Positions 271 to 7,505 of a stretch of 7,505 nt of DNA are shown one piece after another (positions within the stretch are counted from its first letter, which is position 1; every line of letters begins with the position of its first letter). The notes under the pieces are model-generated. The model searched no databases and was not told the DNA's origin. It saw nothing but the letters and a program-made list of their open reading frames with translations. The stretch comes from Selaginella moellendorffii. Lineage: Eukaryota > Plantae > Lycopodiophyta. The translations under genes and the position numbers were made by a program. Location of the stretch: NCBI RefSeq assembly GCF_000143415.4, contig NW_003314665.1:1-7505 (forward strand), read 5' to 3'.

Positions 271-303
271 CTGCAAGAACAGAGAGCAAAAGTAGTACGT
301 TAC
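271..303 (-). other. 33-nt GT-AG intron-like element, possibly an internally deleted intron
   Basis: AAAG|GTAACG...TTTTGCTCTCTGTTCTTGCAG|G on minus; the same donor at 7441 in the right arm is followed by at least 65 nt ending in a T-rich tract. Confidence 0.55.
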
Positions 304-588
304 CTTTTCTCAAACCTTTCGTCTCAAGCAACTTCTCTGGCCTTTCGAGGTGCACTAACGTCTGCTCGCCCGTCACCTCTAGAGGATACCTCAGTCAAAT
401 CGAAACTTGGTAGGTTCCTGCTCTACTTTCCAGCCTTCCTTGGATAACTTCCAAGCCTGGTGACTTCCACCAGTGGACTCTTCACCGTCCGTGAGCAAGA
501 CCCTGCTGTCTTCTTGCTCTGCAACTTCATCTCCTTGAAGATTGCTTGTACACAATCTTCCATGTGACAAGGCATGCACTGTGCTGAC

Positions 589-1365
589 TTACGCGTCACT
601 GCCAGTGTTGGCAGGACACTTTGAGGAGAATCCCAGAGTGCCATTGCTGTGCGAACCACGAGTGTGAGCTTCCAGCTGTTTCTTCTCAGTCAGAGAATCG
701 TCCACCACAACTTCGATCTGCCACCCGGGATCCTGAAAGATCGCATTCCTGCACTGCTTCCTCCGAGAGAACATCCATCGCACGAGCAAAAAGCATGCGA
801 GCAGCACCAAGATCGCAACCAAAACCCACAGAAGAAGCTGGAGCAGCGACCACGGCGTCCTCCGAACCACTGTAACTACTGCTGCGGGTGTTGGTGTGGC
901 CACTGCTGCGTCGTGACCCTCGCGACGATGGTGGTGGTGGTGGTGGTGGTGGTGGTGGTGGTGGTGGTGGTGATGGTGGTGGTTGTGGCGTCCTCCATGG
1001 TGGTGACCATGGTGGTGAACAACCAGAGGAGCTCCATCACCGTGATGATGATGGTACACTGCTGCTGCTGGAGCTGGATCGTGGTGGCGAGCATCAGGCG
1101 CTGGAGCTAGATGAGCAGGGTGGCCACGAGCAGGGTGAACGAAAGCAGCTGGCGCTGGGGCTCGAACTGGAGCGTCACCTTGAAGAACTGGAGCTAAAGC
1201 TGGCACTGGCTCGTGGGCTCCTGGAGGATGGTGTCCATGGTGGTGTGGTGGATGTGCTGGAGCTAGAGCTGGAGCTCGCGGGTGTGAAGCTCGGTGATGG
1301 CCGCCATGCCAGGGCGCTGGAGCTCGGCGGGCAAGCGTTGGGGCGGCGTGAGCGCGAGAGACCAT
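589..1365 (-). CDS. Hypothetical His/Pro/Ala-rich single-pass membrane protein (258 aa) with AGP-like AP/PA dipeptides, 18-His run and one TM helix
   Basis: Open ATG-to-TAA frame in a GC-rich island; 47 His in the first 151 aa; recurring APAP/PALAP motifs; hydrophobic stretch LLQLLLWVLVAILVLLACFLLV (aa 174-195, nt 846-781) followed by basic RWMFSRRK. No signal peptide seen. Termini uncertain because both lie beside GTAAG donor-like sites. Confidence 0.65.
   Translation of the reverse strand: MVSRAHAAPTLARRAPAPWHGGHHRASHPRAPALAPAHPPHHHGHHPPGAHEPVPALAPVLQGDAPVRAPAPAAFVHPARGHPAHLAPAPDARHHDPAPAAAVYHHHHGDGAPLVVHHHGHHHGGRHNHHHHHHHHHHHHHHHHHHRREGHDAAVATPTPAAVVTVVRRTPWSLLQLLLWVLVAILVLLACFLLVRWMFSRRKQCRNAIFQDPGWQIEVVVDDSLTEKKQLEAHTRGSHSNGTLGFSSKCPANTGSDA
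928..981 (-). repeat. (CAC/CAT)18 coding microsatellite, poly-His
   Basis: Plus strand ATG(GTG)14ATG(GTG)2; the paralogue has (CAC)6 at 6749-6766. Confidence 0.97.
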
Positions 1366-2493
1366 AGCTTACCTGACGAGAGCTTCGACAATAGAAAAAT
1401 CCAAGCGAGAAAGATTATAACCTAACCCTTGACTTAGAAAATAGAAAATAAAGAGGTACTTTTGGCTTTGTGAAAAAAACAAGAGCTTGTGACGTTGTGG
1501 ATTGTCAGACTTGAACTGAGCATGCCAAAGAGCCCAAACCTAGATGTGAACAGCGATTTAATCTCACAATCACGAAATGCTCAATATTTCAAAAAGATAA
1601 GACATTTTTAATTTGATGGCAACTCCTTTCCATGCTCAATTCTAATTTACTTGCATTGAACGAAACTTTTTTACTCGTTTGCAAAAAAGTGGGAAAAAGA
1701 AACACAAGATAAATATCTATGCATTGCTCTGTTGACAGTCTCACGGTGCAACATCCATCCATAGCTCCCCCAGTCAACACCAGTAAAATCGGTCAAAACG
1801 CCTGGAACGACCTAATAATCAAACATATTTGGAGATGCTGGTTATTGATCCCTAAGCGAGCACTCTACCATCTGAGTTATCTCCCCTTAGCAAAGAAACA
1901 AAAATGCTAAACTTTTCTCTTCACCATTCTAATACTCATCCTTGGAGATTCTGGCAGCTTTTGTTGCATTTCAAGAGCCTTTTGAGAGATGAGCTTTGGA
2001 AAGCCCACCATCTCCAGCAAGTTTCTATAGCCAAGAAGCTGCATCAGCAGGCAACCATGAAGAATGTTACTAATGCTTATAATAATAATACATATTATAG
2101 TAATAGTAATCACAAGAGGAGGAGGAAAAGGGATAGTGTTTTGCTTTGCAGTGTTATGCAAGAGGATGAGTAAAGCAATTGGTAAAACCAACACAATATA
2201 AATCAACTGGTATGGTCTTCTGTACCAATCAAATTGTCTAAACACTAATATTAATTGGTATTTTGGTTTGCTAGTAAACATATTTAGCTACATATTTGTA
2301 TAGCTAAAAGTCTTTTAAAATGAGTAACTTGTTTTTCTTACAAAAGCTCAAAATTGCAAATGTCACCTTCACATTCTTTCAAAATTTAAGTGCATTTGCT
2401 TTTCTGAACAAACAAATAGAGATATTGGGCATGCTTGATCAATCCAAAGAAACCAATTATTAAAAGCTTACTTGGTGATGGATTTTGTTTCAG

Positions 2494-2577
2494 GTGGCCT
2501 CTCTCCATTCCTTGTAATCCAAGCATGTTGTCCTGCCTGGATCTTGTACCAAAACCAAACTAATGCCTGTGGAACTT
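2494..2577 (+). other. Candidate orphan 84-nt exon inside a left-arm-only segment
   Basis: TTTTGTTTCAG| acceptor ending 2493 and |GTAAGT donor at 2578; one open frame GLSPFLVIQACCPAWILYQNQTNACGT. Confidence 0.3.
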
Positions 2578-2818
2578 GTAAGTTGTAACAAGCAAATCAA
2601 TGCCTTCCTACTGACCTCAAGAATGTACAACTTAATGTAGTCCTATACAGATCTGATAATAGAGAGAGCAAAAGGAGTCATTAAAAATATTTTCAAATAT
2701 TCTGGTACACGAAAGAATAATTTCTTAATGTTTTCGTGGCAATATTTTTATTAAACAGGTATTTTTAAAAATTTTAAATTTAAATAGTATTTAGATCTGA
2801 GTGGCAATATTTCCTATT

Positions 2819-2860
2819 TAATAGAGGTTTTACCTTCTGACCTGGTAATAGAGGTTTTAC
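2819..2860 (+). repeat. 15-bp direct repeat TAATAGAGGTTTTAC at the inner breakpoint of the left arm
   Basis: Exact copies at 2819-2833 and 2846-2860. Confidence 0.9.
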
Positions 2861-3218
2861 ATGAAGCAATGCTTGGTTTACTTGATAGTAGTATCAATCA
2901 TTGAATAATTTGAATGAGCAATAATTATATACATATTTATAAATTATAAATCAAGATTAATATTATTGCATATCAATAGTGGAATAGAAAAGAATATACT
3001 TGAAATTTTTTTAGGAAATTTTATAAATTATAAACATGATCATAAATTATAAAAAAGATTAATCTAAATGAACAACAACCATTAGATAGTAGAATATCCT
3101 AAAATATCCAAGCATATTCAAAGTATATATAATACCACTTCAAGTTTGCTTAAGCAAACCAGTTATATGTATGTATATATATAGTGTTTGGTCTCTTAAA
3201 CTTACACAAGCTTATTCA

Positions 3219-3701
3219 CTATAAAACTTTAGACTTAAGTTTTTCCAACATTTTGTTGTAGAATATTCTTCTTTCAACCATGACCTGTACAAATATACAA
3301 ATTTCATAATTACAATTCAAGTTTCCTGATTTCGTATTTGTAGGAGAAACAATAAATATATGAAGATTACAAATACTTGGTGCAAAGACAATATACTCAA
3401 AGGCAATATAGTTAAAAAGTAAATATGAATCAAGCAACAATACCATAATCACATGTATATAGTTTTCAATTAGGAAAGTATTATTGTAAATGGGAATTTT
3501 TACAACATTATAATCAGCCAATTTCCAAGTTGCAATTGCACATACTTCTTTTAATGTTAAATTTCTAAAGTCTTTCATCCTTTGTATAGGATGGATCCAA
3601 ATGTTAAATTTTGAATTCATTTTAATGTTTGTGTAAGCTATAAATTTTTCTTTTCCAATTTGCCAACTTACCTTGTTTATCCGACCAACACTACCTTGAA
3701 C
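3219..3701 (-). other. Unassigned AT-rich open reading frame (160 stop-free codons; 133 aa from ATG 3620)
   Basis: Frame stays open 27 codons upstream of the ATG, to TAA at 3704-3702. No motif recognised. Confidence 0.3.
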
Positions 3702-4740
3702 TTATCTAAGTTCTCTCGCTAAAGTTCCTACTTATTGTACCAACTTCTACTTAGTTCTACTTGGTTTCAGCTACTCACTGCATGAACAATAGAGCATTAG
3801 CCATCCATCCACGGATTCCCAAATCTCTCCTAATCCCTCTTCCTAGGTTAGATTGGACTTAAGGTTTGGCTACACTCCCCATATGCACAAATAGTCAAGC
3901 ACACTAAACCTCTAAGTTCCTAACATCCCTTGGTACAACATAACTTGATTATGGGACCCTCTAAATCCTAAGCGTTAGTTGCAACACTTGCTTCGGGATG
4001 TTGGGAGGAAACACTATAGCATAATGGCTTGGTACAAGTACCCCTACTCCCCCACTTCCATCCTAAAGGGAAAGCCCAAACCCCTAGGAAGGGCAAAGAC
4101 CAATGACCCACAAAGTACTCAAGTGAGGCACTAGTCCACATAAACCAGGAGCACTGTAATTGGTTTCCCTTTCAAGAGTGGGAGCTGCTATTGAGCACTT
4201 CCTTGGGTGGCCCCTTTGGCACCACCCGAGTCCATGTTCACTCTCACCCAGTCTCAACCTCAAGTCAGTTTAGAAGCACCACTGAAAAGTTCCTTCAAGA
4301 CTGGTTCCTAAACCTCACTATCCCTACTATACTTTTGGAAGCCCTTACAAGCCCCCCCAGGGAGAGACACACTTTGGGCTTTCACCCCACGACCTATATT
4401 AATATTCAGTTTTGGTCTCAAACTTGATCTCAGAGTCGATTTCGGACTTGACTTTGCACTTGATCTCAAACCCAACTTCGGGCTTTGTCTCGGACTCGAT
4501 TTCGAACACGGTCTCAGATCTGATATTAGATCTCGGACTCGGTCTTGAACTCGGTCTCAAACTTGGTCTTGGAGTCGGTCTTGGATTTGATCTCGGACTT
4601 GGTCTTGAATTCGGTCTTAAAGTTGGTCTCAGACTCTATCTTGGAATCGGTCTCATCCCATGAACTCTTTATCATTTTAGTCCTACCTTTGGGGATCCTT
4701 TAGCCTTCGACACCTCGAGGAGTTAATTCCTTATAGTTTG
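3670..4740. mobile_element. Compositionally distinct GC-richer block, possible non-coding transposon/LTR remnant
   Basis: Abrupt GC rise against AT-rich flanks, no credible ORF, contains a transition-decayed minisatellite. No termini or target-site duplication found. Confidence 0.25.
4414..4654. repeat. Degenerate 12-bp minisatellite, consensus about GGTCTCGGACTC, ~19.5 units
   Basis: 9 units, a 7-nt interruption (GATATTA), 10 units and a half unit; e.g. GATCTCGGACTC GGTCTTGAACTC GGTCTCAAACTT GGTCTTGGAGTC. Confidence 0.92.
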
Positions 4741-4786
4741 GACATAAAATGAAAAAAATAGATATTGGTATTGTATTTGAAATTAA

Positions 4787-5486
4787 AATAAATTTTATCT
4801 ATAAATTATATGAAAAACAGTATAGAGCATTTCTTATAATTAAGCTCAAAGGGACTTTATAGTAAATAAAAACTTAAATAATTAGTATAAATACTAATTA
4901 TTAAATTTTAAAATAATAAATTATTCTCTAAATTAGGTGATAACATATAACCTTTGCCATAAAGATTAGATAGTGGTAATTTAAACAGATATAAATATTA
5001 TTTAAATTACTAATTTTATTTAAAATACCTAATTAATAAAGTTGTTGCAACTAAAACCTTAATAGAATATTCTTTAGTATATTGTTTTGTTCTAATTGAG
5101 GTTGATATTGGTGTTGCTCGAGTTCAAGGACAAGGGCAAGGATGTGGTTGTGAGCTAATTGATATACACATTTTCTGTATTCCTTTTCTATATTCCATAC
5201 ACTCACATTAATAAATTATTATTTATAAGTTACACATAAAATAACAAAGGGCATTTTTTAAAGTTACGCTCAAATGGATTTTATAGCAATAATTAAAGAT
5301 TTAATAATTACTATTATTAAATATTAAATTGATAATTTCTTCTATAAATTAGGTGGCAAGGCAAAACCTTTATTGATTAGGAAATATTGCCACTCATATT
5401 TAAATATTATTTAAATTACTAATTTGTTTAAACTACCTCTTTAATAGAAATATTGCCACTAAAACATTAAGAAAATATTTTTTAGT
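4787..5486. repeat. Degenerate AT-rich direct repeat, copies ~4787-5078 and ~5210-5486
   Basis: Exact 25-mer TAAATATTATTTAAATTACTAATTT at 4992 and 5401; TAAATTAGGTG at 4929 and 5345; collinear GCTCAAA..GGA.TTTATAG and ACTAAAAC.TTAA anchors. Confidence 0.8.
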
Positions 5487-6359
5487 GTACCAAAATATTT
5501 TAAAAATTTATCATTTTGTTGACCTAGCTCTCTCTATTGGCAGATCTGTCCTAGTAAGCTTTTAATAATTAATTTCTTTGAATTGATCAAGCGTGACCAA
5601 TATCTCTATTTGTTTGTTCAGGGGATATGAGAGACCAAAAGCAAATGTGCTTAAACTTTCAAAGAATGTGAATATGACATTTCCAATTTTGAAATTTTGT
5701 AAGAAAAAAAGTTACTCTTTTTAAAACACTTTTAGCTATACAATTATGTAGCTAAATATGTTTACTAACAAACCAAAATACCAAATAATATTAGTGTTGC
5801 TAACAATTATAATAATAATACATAATATGGTAATAATATTCACAGTTCCAGGCGTTTTGACCGGATTTACTGGTGTTGAAGCTATGGATGGATGTTGCAC
5901 CATGAGACTATCAAAACAGCAGTGGATAGATATTTATCTTTTTCCCACTTTTTTGCAAAAGGAAGTAGTTTGTGCATGCTGATGGCTTGTGTCTTCATGA
6001 GCTCCATGACTCACATTCAATGAATGCCAAATTTCCAAAAGTTTGAAAAAGGGAGTAAGAAATTTTCGTTCACTGCAATTACATTAAGATTGAGTTTTGC
6101 TATCAAATTAAAGATGTTTTCTTTTTTTGAAATATTTGTATATCTATCATACCTAGAGAATTTCGTGATTGTGAGATTAAATCACTGTTCACATGCTCTT
6201 TGGCATGCTCAAGCCCGATGGCACCCTTCACAGTGTCACGAGCTCTCAAGTCTATTTGTGTTTTTTTTCACAAAGCCAAAAGTACCTCTTTATTTTCTAG
6301 GTCAAGGGTTAAGTTATAATCTTTCTCCCTTGGAGTTTTCTATTGTCGTCAGGTAAGTT

Positions 6360-7129
6360 ATGGTCTCTCGCGCTCACGCCACCCCAACGCTTGCCCGCCG
6401 AGCTCCAGCGCCCTGGCATGAAGGCCATCACTGAGCTCCACACCCGCGAGGTCCAGCTCTAGCTCCAGCACCACACCACCATGGACACCATCCTCGGGAA
6501 GGCCACGAGCCAGTGCCAGCTTTAGCTCCCGTTCTTCAAGGTGACGCTCCAGTTCGAGCCCCAGCGCCAGCTGCTTTCGTTCACCCTGCTCACGGCCACC
6601 CTGCTCATCTAGCTCCAGCGCTGGTATCCTTGATCATGCTCGCCACCACAATCCAGCTCCAGCAGCAGCAGTGTACCATCATCATCACGGTGATGGAGCT
6701 CCTCTGGTTGTTCACCACCATGGTCACCACCATGGAGGACGCCACAACCACCACCACCACCACCACTGTCGCGAGGGTCACGACGCAGCAGTGGCCACAC
6801 CAACACCCGCAGCAGTGGCCACACCAACACCCGCAGCAGTAGTTACAGTGGTTCGGAGGACGCCGTGGTCGCTGCTCCAGCTTCTTCTGTGGGTTTTGGT
6901 TGCGATCTTGGTGCTGCTCGCATGCTTTTTGCTCGTGCGATGGATGTTCTCTCGGAGGAAGCAGCGCAGTAATGCGATCTTTCAGGATCCCGGGTGGCAG
7001 ATCGAAGTTGTGGTGGACGATTCTCTGACTGAGAAGAAACAGCTGGAAGCTCACACTCGTGGTTCGCACAGAAATGGCACCCTGGGATTCTCCTCAAAGT
7101 GTCCTGCCAACACTGGCAGTGACGCGTAA
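6360..7129 (+). pseudogene. Disrupted paralogue of the His-rich membrane protein gene
   Basis: ATG at 6360 reads MVSRAHATPTLARRAPAPWHEGHH* (TGA at 6432-6434 where the left copy has CGA); net +11 bp at 6622-6635 shifts frame; His run is 6; TM and C-terminus nearly identical to the left copy. ORFs 6513..6842 and 6671..7129 are its fragments. Confidence 0.85.
6785..6840 (+). repeat. 24-bp tandem duplication GCAGCAGTGGCCACACCAACACCC x2 plus 8 bp (AAVATPTP x2)
   Basis: Exact copies at 6785-6808 and 6809-6832; single copy in the left arm. Confidence 0.97.
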
Positions 7130-7440
7130 GTCAGCACAGTGCATGCCTTGTCACATGGAAGATTGTGTACAAGCAATCTTCAAGGAGATGAAGTTGCAGA
7201 GCAAGAAGACAGCAGGGTCTTGCTCACGGACGGTGAAGATCACATACAAGGGTCCACTGGTGGAAGTCACCAGACTTGGAAGTTATCGCGCAGCTGGCTC
7301 GGAACATGGACTGGAAAGTAGAGCAGGAACCTACCAAGTTTCGATTTGACTGAGCTATCCTCTAGAGGTGAGGGGCGAGCAGACGTTAGTGCACCTCGAA
7401 AGGCCAGAGAAGTTGCTTGAGACGAAAGGTTTGAGAAAAG

Positions 7441-7505
7441 GTAACGTACTACGTTGCTGGTACCAGGCTAGTACGCGCCTCCTCTCTCGCCTGTTTTGTT
7501 TTTTT
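7441..7505 (+). other. Probable intron start, truncated by the window edge
   Basis: AAAG|GTAACG donor followed by a pyrimidine-rich tract CTCCTCTCTCGCCTGTTTTGTTTTTTT. Confidence 0.5.

Follow-up and report, generated by a model that had tools for sequence, protein, structure and literature searches.

A head-to-head inverted duplication in Selaginella moellendorffii carrying an orphan reading frame, its broken copy and a three-step profile of arm identity

The stretch of S. moellendorffii DNA analyzed here (7,505 nt, with no N and no gaps; below, the window) carries two inverted arms around a spacer (Table 1). The initial annotation had described two arms of more than 2 kb and a spacer of ∼2.5 kb, ending at 292 and 7452 and including a perfect block of 158 bp. 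These statements held on alignment: the arms are 2555 and 2105 nt long and the spacer 2507 nt, the longest mismatch-free arm block is the 158 nt at 479-636/7082-7239, and the outermost one, 292-371/7373-7452, agrees with the proposed ends. Perfect runs between the arms reach 158, 106 and 80 nt. When the arms were compared by BLAST, the outer 1.4 kb gave E = 0; the arm alignment as a whole shows 93.8% identity across 1888 aligned columns, with numerous indels. At their inner ends the arms fade into diverged DNA with no sharp stop. Past the outer ends, the similarity of flank 7456-7505 (only these 50 nt of right flank lie in the window, so the outer boundary is drawn from little sequence) to flank 1-288 is at chance level.

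Table 1. Coordinates of features in the window
Feature	Position	Strand	Description
Left arm of inverted duplication	289..2843		2555 nt
Right arm of inverted duplication	5351..7455		2105 nt
Spacer	2844..5350		2507 nt; no detectable arm homology; AT-rich, then GC-richer core, then AT-rich
Outer tier	289..1094		Pairs with 6636-7455; 98.4% identity, K = 0.016; putative gene-conversion tract
Middle tier	1095..1479		Pairs with 6262-6635; 95.0% identity, K = 0.051
Inner tier	1480..2843		Pairs with 5351-6261; 88.5% identity, K = 0.124, 24 indel events
Left-arm-only stretch	1809..2240		432 nt; insertion in left arm or deletion in right arm, after duplication
Open ORF, orphan	589..1365	-	258 codons, left arm
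Broken ORF copy	6360..7130	+	TGA at 6432-6434, net 11-nt frameshift at 6621-6636
GC-richer spacer core	3640..4745		Array with 12-nt period at ∼4400-4655; unclassified, no Pfam domain, LTR or TIR ends
Direct repeat of 5210-5489	4787..5081	+	74% identity; partner overlaps inner end of right arm

Each arm holds a copy of one open reading frame (ORF); the two copies stand head to head, each reading outward from the centre. One copy is open and the other broken, as previously noted. The product of the left ORF is rich in Pro, Ala and His in its N-terminal half; it also has a poly-His run, a single hydrophobic helix at residues ∼177-200 and a tail of 55 aa. The ORF exceeds the longest one found in all of 1000 shuffles and shows strong 3-periodicity. 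The right copy, which extends from an ATG at 6360 to a TAA at 7128-7130, is interrupted by a nonsense change in codon 25 (CGA>TGA) and by a frameshift relative to the left copy at 6621-6636/1095-1098 (12 additional nt on the right, 1 additional nt on the left). In the right copy, the C-terminal 152 codons form an uninterrupted frame of their own that runs to the TAA shared with the left copy; this stretch lacks an ATG ahead of the membrane helix. Base changes between the copies of the ORF are 17 non-synonymous and 3 synonymous, with three of the four substitutions in the C-terminal part altering the amino acid. This is the pattern of neutral change, and nothing in the comparison of the copies points to purifying selection. 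Reading by eye, we saw candidate splice sites at 1373/6352 and 300/7441.

Searches for relatives of the ORF were negative. Pfam assigned no family to any of 20 ORFs and frames of the window, producing only sub-threshold matches to membrane helices and low-complexity sequence. No relative emerged from word searches in which the query was the whole ORF (poly-His words dominated this run), residues 158-258 or residues 1-128; HMMER, run with the C-terminal 103 aa, had 0 matches among 1.84 billion representative proteins; the ESM Atlas returned sub-threshold matches only, of 0.80 or lower; and an exact look-up in the collection found none of ten window ORFs. We characterize the product of the 258-codon ORF as an orphan, histidine-rich predicted membrane protein, and the ORF as a candidate lineage-specific gene, possibly one that emerged de novo. 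The word ‘gene’, used in the initial annotation, was not sustained for an ORF that has no family, no homologue and no mark of purifying selection between its copies. Rfam and ARAGORN detected no RNA or tRNA gene in the window; the segment 1836-1892 of the reverse strand resembles tRNA ends by eye, a candidate that no tool supported.

The repeat at 4787..5081 is a local tandem duplication by which the spacer was enlarged. A sensitive search for decayed arm homology within the spacer gave only AT-rich low-complexity matches. For the GC-richer core, a reading in terms of LTRs, TIRs or target-site duplications was considered and rejected: TG..CA ends are absent and AT-rich 9-mers occur at chance level. 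The observed/expected ratio of CpG is 0.68 in both ORF copies versus 0.07-0.33 in the surrounding AT-rich DNA.

Arm identity is far from uniform; it falls inward in three steps (Table 1), with 12 mismatches in 767 nt of the outer tier, 18 in 362 nt of the middle tier and 87 in 759 nt of the inner tier. The heterogeneity among tiers is highly significant (chi-square, P = 6e-15); taken singly, the step from the outer to the middle tier has P = 0.002 and that from the middle to the inner tier P = 0.0004. The outer tier spans the C-terminal half of the ORF and ∼300 nt past the stop codon, the middle tier spans the N-terminal part of the ORF and ∼115 nt upstream and houses both disabling lesions, and the inner tier includes 605 nt unique to the left arm and 151 nt unique to the right arm. 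Since the 5′ flank and the N-terminal part of the ORF have practically the same divergence (K = 0.053 and K = 0.051) despite GC contents of 0.34 and 0.65, the tiers are set by position rather than by base composition. Transitions make up 58 of 117 arm differences, an ordinary share. This tiered identity was absent from the initial annotation, and it points to arm-to-arm gene conversion.

Indeed, the outer tier differs by 1.6%, far below the rest, and this includes the non-coding DNA past the stop codon; hence, later homogenization of the outer 0.8 kb by conversion between the arms is the likeliest explanation, as judged solely from the heterogeneity between the two arms of this one locus. The same tiered picture would be produced by strong constraint acting on this 0.8 kb in both copies, or by an origin in two steps.

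For the locus as a whole, we consider as reasonably probable a local inverted segmental duplication followed by divergence, loss of the right copy and conversion of the outer arms. A unit of ∼2.1-2.6 kb, still recognizable in both arms as the orphan ORF with ∼1.5 kb of upstream DNA, was copied in reverse beside itself, head to head. The inner AT-rich parts, which now differ by ∼12% substitutions and many indels, would then have diverged, and the symmetry of the centre would have faded while it grew through the tandem duplication and a GC-richer insert; here the anatomy is observed and the order of events is our reconstruction. The right ORF was disabled by the nonsense change, which is of CpG type, and by the frameshift, both of which are present in the sequence. 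Conversion between the arms may later have evened out the outer 0.8 kb. The pair thus described looks like a relic of a gene plus a pseudogene, or like a pair of ORF relics, i.e. an ordinary leftover of duplication.

Gene duplication in Selaginella is described as taking a local and segmental route, with 6693 tandem duplicates reported for S. moellendorffii (PMC5750206). Head-to-head segmental duplications made of a gene and a pseudogene, which occur in many plant genomes, share with our locus the inverted copies a few kilobases apart, the disabling of one copy by nonsense and frameshift changes, and the further divergence, with indels, of non-coding parts; the locus differs from them in having an ORF of no known family and three positional tiers of identity. 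The ampliconic palindromes of the primate Y chromosome have arms that are kept alike by arm-to-arm gene conversion. As in those palindromes, inverted arms surround a unique spacer, and one section of the arms is much more similar than expected from the age of the remainder. Here, however, the arms are of 2 kb rather than of tens of kilobases to megabases, only the outer 0.8 kb is homogenized, and only to 98.4%, and one copy of the ORF is already dead instead of having been preserved by conversion.

The initial annotation saw in the foldback a possible source of hairpin RNA. The locus would then be an endogenous inverted-repeat (endoIR) siRNA locus: a read-through transcript would fold into an imperfect stem of ∼0.8-2 kb, Dicer-like enzymes would cut it, and the resulting siRNAs would target the left ORF, which is intact, or paralogues. 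We regard this as unlikely, although it fares better than the remaining alternatives. The outer 0.8 kb of the arms, 98.4% complementary and containing the perfect runs given above, would suffice for a long dsRNA (the duplex energy of 479-910 versus 6808-7239 is -933 kcal/mol), and maintenance of the stem could be what the outer-tier identity reflects. However, as the annotation itself had pointed out, the mRNAs of the copies would be unable to form the hairpin; our analysis agrees, since the outward ORFs yield same-sense transcripts that do not pair, and their own promoters cannot supply RNA spanning the arms. With this orientation, a hairpin RNA depends on an outside read-through transcript of ∼7 kb, and a stem made of the well-matched parts would leave 5.5 kb in the loop. 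Also, the CpG ratio of the ORF copies relative to their surroundings is unlike that of long-term, heavily methylated targets (weak evidence), the ordinary share of transitions does not favor an siRNA target, and lycophytes were reported to have no strong 24-nt siRNA peak (PMC7111516).

Loci of the endoIR kind do exist in plants; Arabidopsis IR71 yields dsRNA of ∼3 kb, and such loci were proposed as starting points of MIRNA genes (PMC10827316). The birth of proto-MIRNA genes by inverted duplication of a target gene is attributed to Allen et al. 2004, as cited in PMC10827316. The locus resembles these systems in its long imperfect inverted arms, derived from ORF-bearing sequence and adjoining a possible target. 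It differs in its 2.5 kb spacer (5.5 kb between the well-matched parts), in ORFs that face apart and in being known from DNA alone.

The initial annotation also offered a transposon reading, in which the window would show the inside of a foldback or Mutator-like element with a captured ORF fragment; a Pack-MULE, or two opposite insertions of one element, would be variants. Several features are in keeping with such elements: the arms are long and inverted and hold a piece of ORF, this ORF is an orphan that lacks homologues, and there is AT-rich DNA, poor in CpG, in which short sub-repeats lie close to the inner ends of the arms. We nevertheless found this reading improbable. No target-site duplication of 8-11 nt accompanies the outer ends at 289/7455: the left flank ends in AGAGAGCA, the right flank begins with GCTGGTAC, and positions 281-288 and 7456-7463 have nothing in common. 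In the tested spacer frames of 57 aa or more, Pfam recognized neither a transposase nor any other TE domain, the inner arm ends are fuzzy, unlike the sharp ends of a transposon, and tiered identity is not expected from two independent insertions.

Constraint might replace conversion as the cause of the similarity of the outer tier if both copies functioned throughout their outer 0.8 kb: the right copy could, for instance, express the membrane helix and tail from another start, or an element acting at the RNA level could be common to both arms. The 152 open codons retained in the right copy, in the best preserved tier, are what makes one consider this scenario, to which we assign a low probability: the open stretch offers no ATG ahead of the membrane helix, the C-terminal substitutions mostly change the protein (three of four), and the ∼300 nt past the stop codon, conserved like the coding part, contain indels of 12 and 17/3 nt.

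Finally, we regard it as very improbable that faulty assembly joined two haplotypes head to head or that a chimeric clone or read created the arrangement: the 1.6% difference of the outer tier is within the range that alleles can show, but a mis-join predicts one sharp junction and homology continuing outward, whereas here a unique spacer of 2.5 kb occupies the centre, the arm homology beside it is progressively decayed (88.5%, 24 indel events), homology ends at 289/7455 (with 50 nt of right flank visible), and the window has no N or gap.

One could speculate about a working lycophyte hairpin, in which an outside transcript would run across both arms, conversion would keep a 0.8-kb stem, and siRNAs would tune or silence the adjoining, lineage-specific gene of a histidine-rich membrane protein. 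We see this as a long shot; if true, it would place the locus at a very early stage of the path from inverted duplication to MIRNA, in a lineage with an unusual small-RNA make-up, and if small RNAs are present, it could be used as an example of a young hairpin adjoining its own target. Under the local inverted duplication that we prefer, the locus would be one more event of this kind in a genome whose duplicates reportedly arise mainly by local events, and its three-step profile would cleanly illustrate, on a small scale, a probable conversion between the arms of a plant nuclear palindrome.

The large inverted repeat proposed in the initial annotation was recovered both by a repeat finder and by self-BLAST (E = 0 for the arm-to-arm alignment of the outer 1.4 kb), together with its spacer of ∼2.5 kb and its longest perfect inverted block, 158 nt at 479-636/7082-7239. 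The end coordinates assigned earlier, 292-7452, are explained by the outermost perfect block of the arms, 292-371/7373-7452. We lean towards reading the locus as an orphan ORF that underwent an ordinary segmental duplication in inverted orientation fairly long ago, the arms being partly homogenised later.

Parts of the inverted repeat, zones (tiers) of arm identity and copies of the ORF in the window; K, Jukes-Cantor
Feature	Coordinates	Paired with	Strand	Mismatches	Identity	K	Description
Left arm	289-2843						
Spacer	2844-5350						2507 nt
Right arm	5351-7455						
Outer tier	289-1094	6636-7455		12/767	98.4%	0.016	
Middle tier	1095-1479	6262-6635		18/362	95.0%	0.051	
Inner tier	1480-2843	5351-6261		87/759	88.5%	0.124	
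Left ORF	589-1365		minus				ATG-to-TAA, 258 codons, open
Right copy of ORF	6360-7130 (ATG 6360, TAA 7128-7130)		plus				same frame, broken twice

Considering the two ORF copies, whose 5′ ends face each other so that both read outward, we saw that codon 25 of the right copy is TGA (6432-6434; a CGA>TGA change at a CpG) and that the second lesion is a frameshifting indel at 6621-6636/1095-1098, where the right copy has 12 extra nt and the left copy one. The remaining length differences within the ORF are multiples of three, produced by slippage. The poly-His microsatellite (929-988 vs 6742-6766) contains (TGG)20 in the left copy and ∼8 repeats in the right, i.e. 18-20 histidines vs 6, and the right copy carries a perfect 24-nt tandem duplication at 6784-6831; both are products of replication slippage. 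A further 6-nt indel separates the copies.

The left ORF looks like coding sequence: its stop-free run of 259 codons compares with a maximum of 257 in 1000 shuffles of 289-1380, and its GC content by codon position (0.79/0.50/0.51) has strong three-base periodicity. An in-frame TAA directly upstream of the ATG means that an upstream coding exon cannot join in the ORF frame. The predicted product is rich in His (19%), Ala (15.5%) and Pro (11%), with a long poly-His run, a 55-residue tail and a single strongly hydrophobic helix with Arg/Lys on its flanks (19-residue hydropathy window, peak 3.3, start residue 177); it has no signal peptide. No Pfam family scored above threshold, and word-index searches with the whole protein, residues 158-258 and residues 1-128 gave no matches, as did a full HMMER search of the C-terminal 103 residues against 1.84 billion representative proteins (E <= 0.001); a protein atlas held no usable match, and the exact product was absent from a 15-billion-protein collection. 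Base differences between the copies (17 in amino-acid-changing codons, 3 in synonymous ones) are close to neutral expectation, thus the pair shows no sign of purifying selection. For these two reasons we use the label orphan ORF rather than gene; we give about even odds to its being a genuine lineage-specific gene. Of the ‘intact gene and pseudogene’ described initially, the pairing of an open and a broken copy is confirmed, while ‘gene’ is unproven.

The three tiers differ significantly in divergence (chi-square p = 6e-15; outer vs middle, p = 0.002; middle vs inner, p = 0.0004), and the inner tier has 24 indel events as well, with 605 nt present in the left arm only and 151 nt in the right arm only. 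Divergence of the arms tracks position, neither composition nor coding; the AT-rich 5′ flank (GC 0.34; K 0.053) is about as diverged as the GC-rich N-terminal coding part (K 0.051), and the outer tier takes in ∼300 nt 3′ of the stop codon. Identity steps down from ∼99% (outer tier) to 95% (middle tier) at the indel that shifts the frame; the middle tier contains the two lesions of the right copy. This pattern would be read most simply as an old inverted duplication, its age given by the inner tier, with later arm-to-arm gene conversion, in one or more events, that would have entered from the outer end in tracts halted at heterologies. Constraint on both copies could also keep the outer tier highly identical; it fits poorly, however, because 3/4 C-terminal changes alter the amino acid and indels of 12 nt and 17/3 nt occur 3′ of the stop codon.

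A 38-nt block (1442-1479/6262-6299), 80-115 nt upstream of the ATG, is identical between the arms within more diverged surroundings; it may be a promoter or 5′-UTR element of the ORF.

The initial annotation had suggested hairpin/siRNA self-silencing. If transcribed across the full 7 kb in a single RNA, the outer arms would pair almost perfectly, with a computed duplex energy of −933 kcal/mol between 479-910 and 6808-7239. In plants, transcribed endogenous inverted repeats are processed to siRNAs of 21-24 nt, and MIRNA genes are suspected to originate from such repeats (PMC10827316). Such putative silencing is, however, disfavoured by the orientation: since the ORFs point outward, their own transcripts have the same sense, and an external promoter and a 5.5 kb loop would be needed, in agreement with the initial remark that only read-through from outside could make the hairpin. 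CpG at 0.68 of expectation in both ORF copies, vs 0.07-0.33 in the AT-rich DNA around, is, as weak evidence, not the mark of long-term heavy arm methylation, and a strong 24-nt siRNA peak is reportedly absent in lycophytes (PMC7111516).

The other initial proposal, a gene-capturing foldback or Mutator-like element, is unsupported, and so is a Pack-MULE, as no 8-11-nt direct repeat is common to the two outer flanks, no transposase or reverse-transcriptase remnant was found anywhere in the window, and the inner arm ends are gradual, with homology tapering off at 2843/5351. The spacer was lengthened by local tandem duplication: 4787-5081 is repeated in direct orientation at 5210-5489 (74% identity; period ∼415 nt), and the latter copy overlaps the right arm at its inner end. 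The spacer centre (3640-4745; GC 0.45 vs 0.20-0.25 around) has neither TG..CA ends nor terminal inverted repeats, its flanking 9-mers are AT-rich and at chance level only, and Pfam returned no protein domain in any of the frames submitted (57 aa or more). A 12-nt-period array at about 4400-4655 reads on the minus strand as a four-residue repeat (K/E, S/T, E/K, I/F/T) interrupted by stops.

A 432-nt segment, 1809-2240, is present in the left arm only (CpG observed/expected 0.07). By eye, 1836-1892(-) resembles a tRNA that lacks its anticodon arm and retains the 5′ half and the 3′ end; neither ARAGORN nor Rfam supported the resemblance. A 50-nt AT-rich stretch, 2065-2114, matches 5795-5844 (84%) in direct orientation inside the inverted arms, either by a small left-arm inversion or by low-complexity similarity.

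Two haplotypes mis-joined head to head would produce arms that meet at one junction and homology that extends outward, whereas the window, with no N, has a 2.5 kb unique centre bordered by decayed homology, and arm homology ends within it on both outer sides (right flank visible: 50 nt), these 50 nt right of 7455 resembling the 288 nt left of 289 no better than shuffles do.

Splice-site-like sequences were seen by eye 7 nt upstream of the ATG (CAG/GTAAG, 1366-1373/6352-6359) and at the outer arm end (AAAAG/GTAACG, 296-304/7437-7446); the outer duplication breakpoint may be intronic, within a longer transcription unit. The left flank, 1-288, has gene-like composition as in the adjoining arm (GC 0.49; CpG observed/expected 0.53) and may hold a neighbouring gene or exon; its ORFs had no Pfam match.

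Selaginella is without whole-genome duplication, new duplicates arising by local or segmental events, and S. moellendorffii has 6693 tandem duplicates (PMC5750206); an inverted duplication of this kind is therefore unsurprising.
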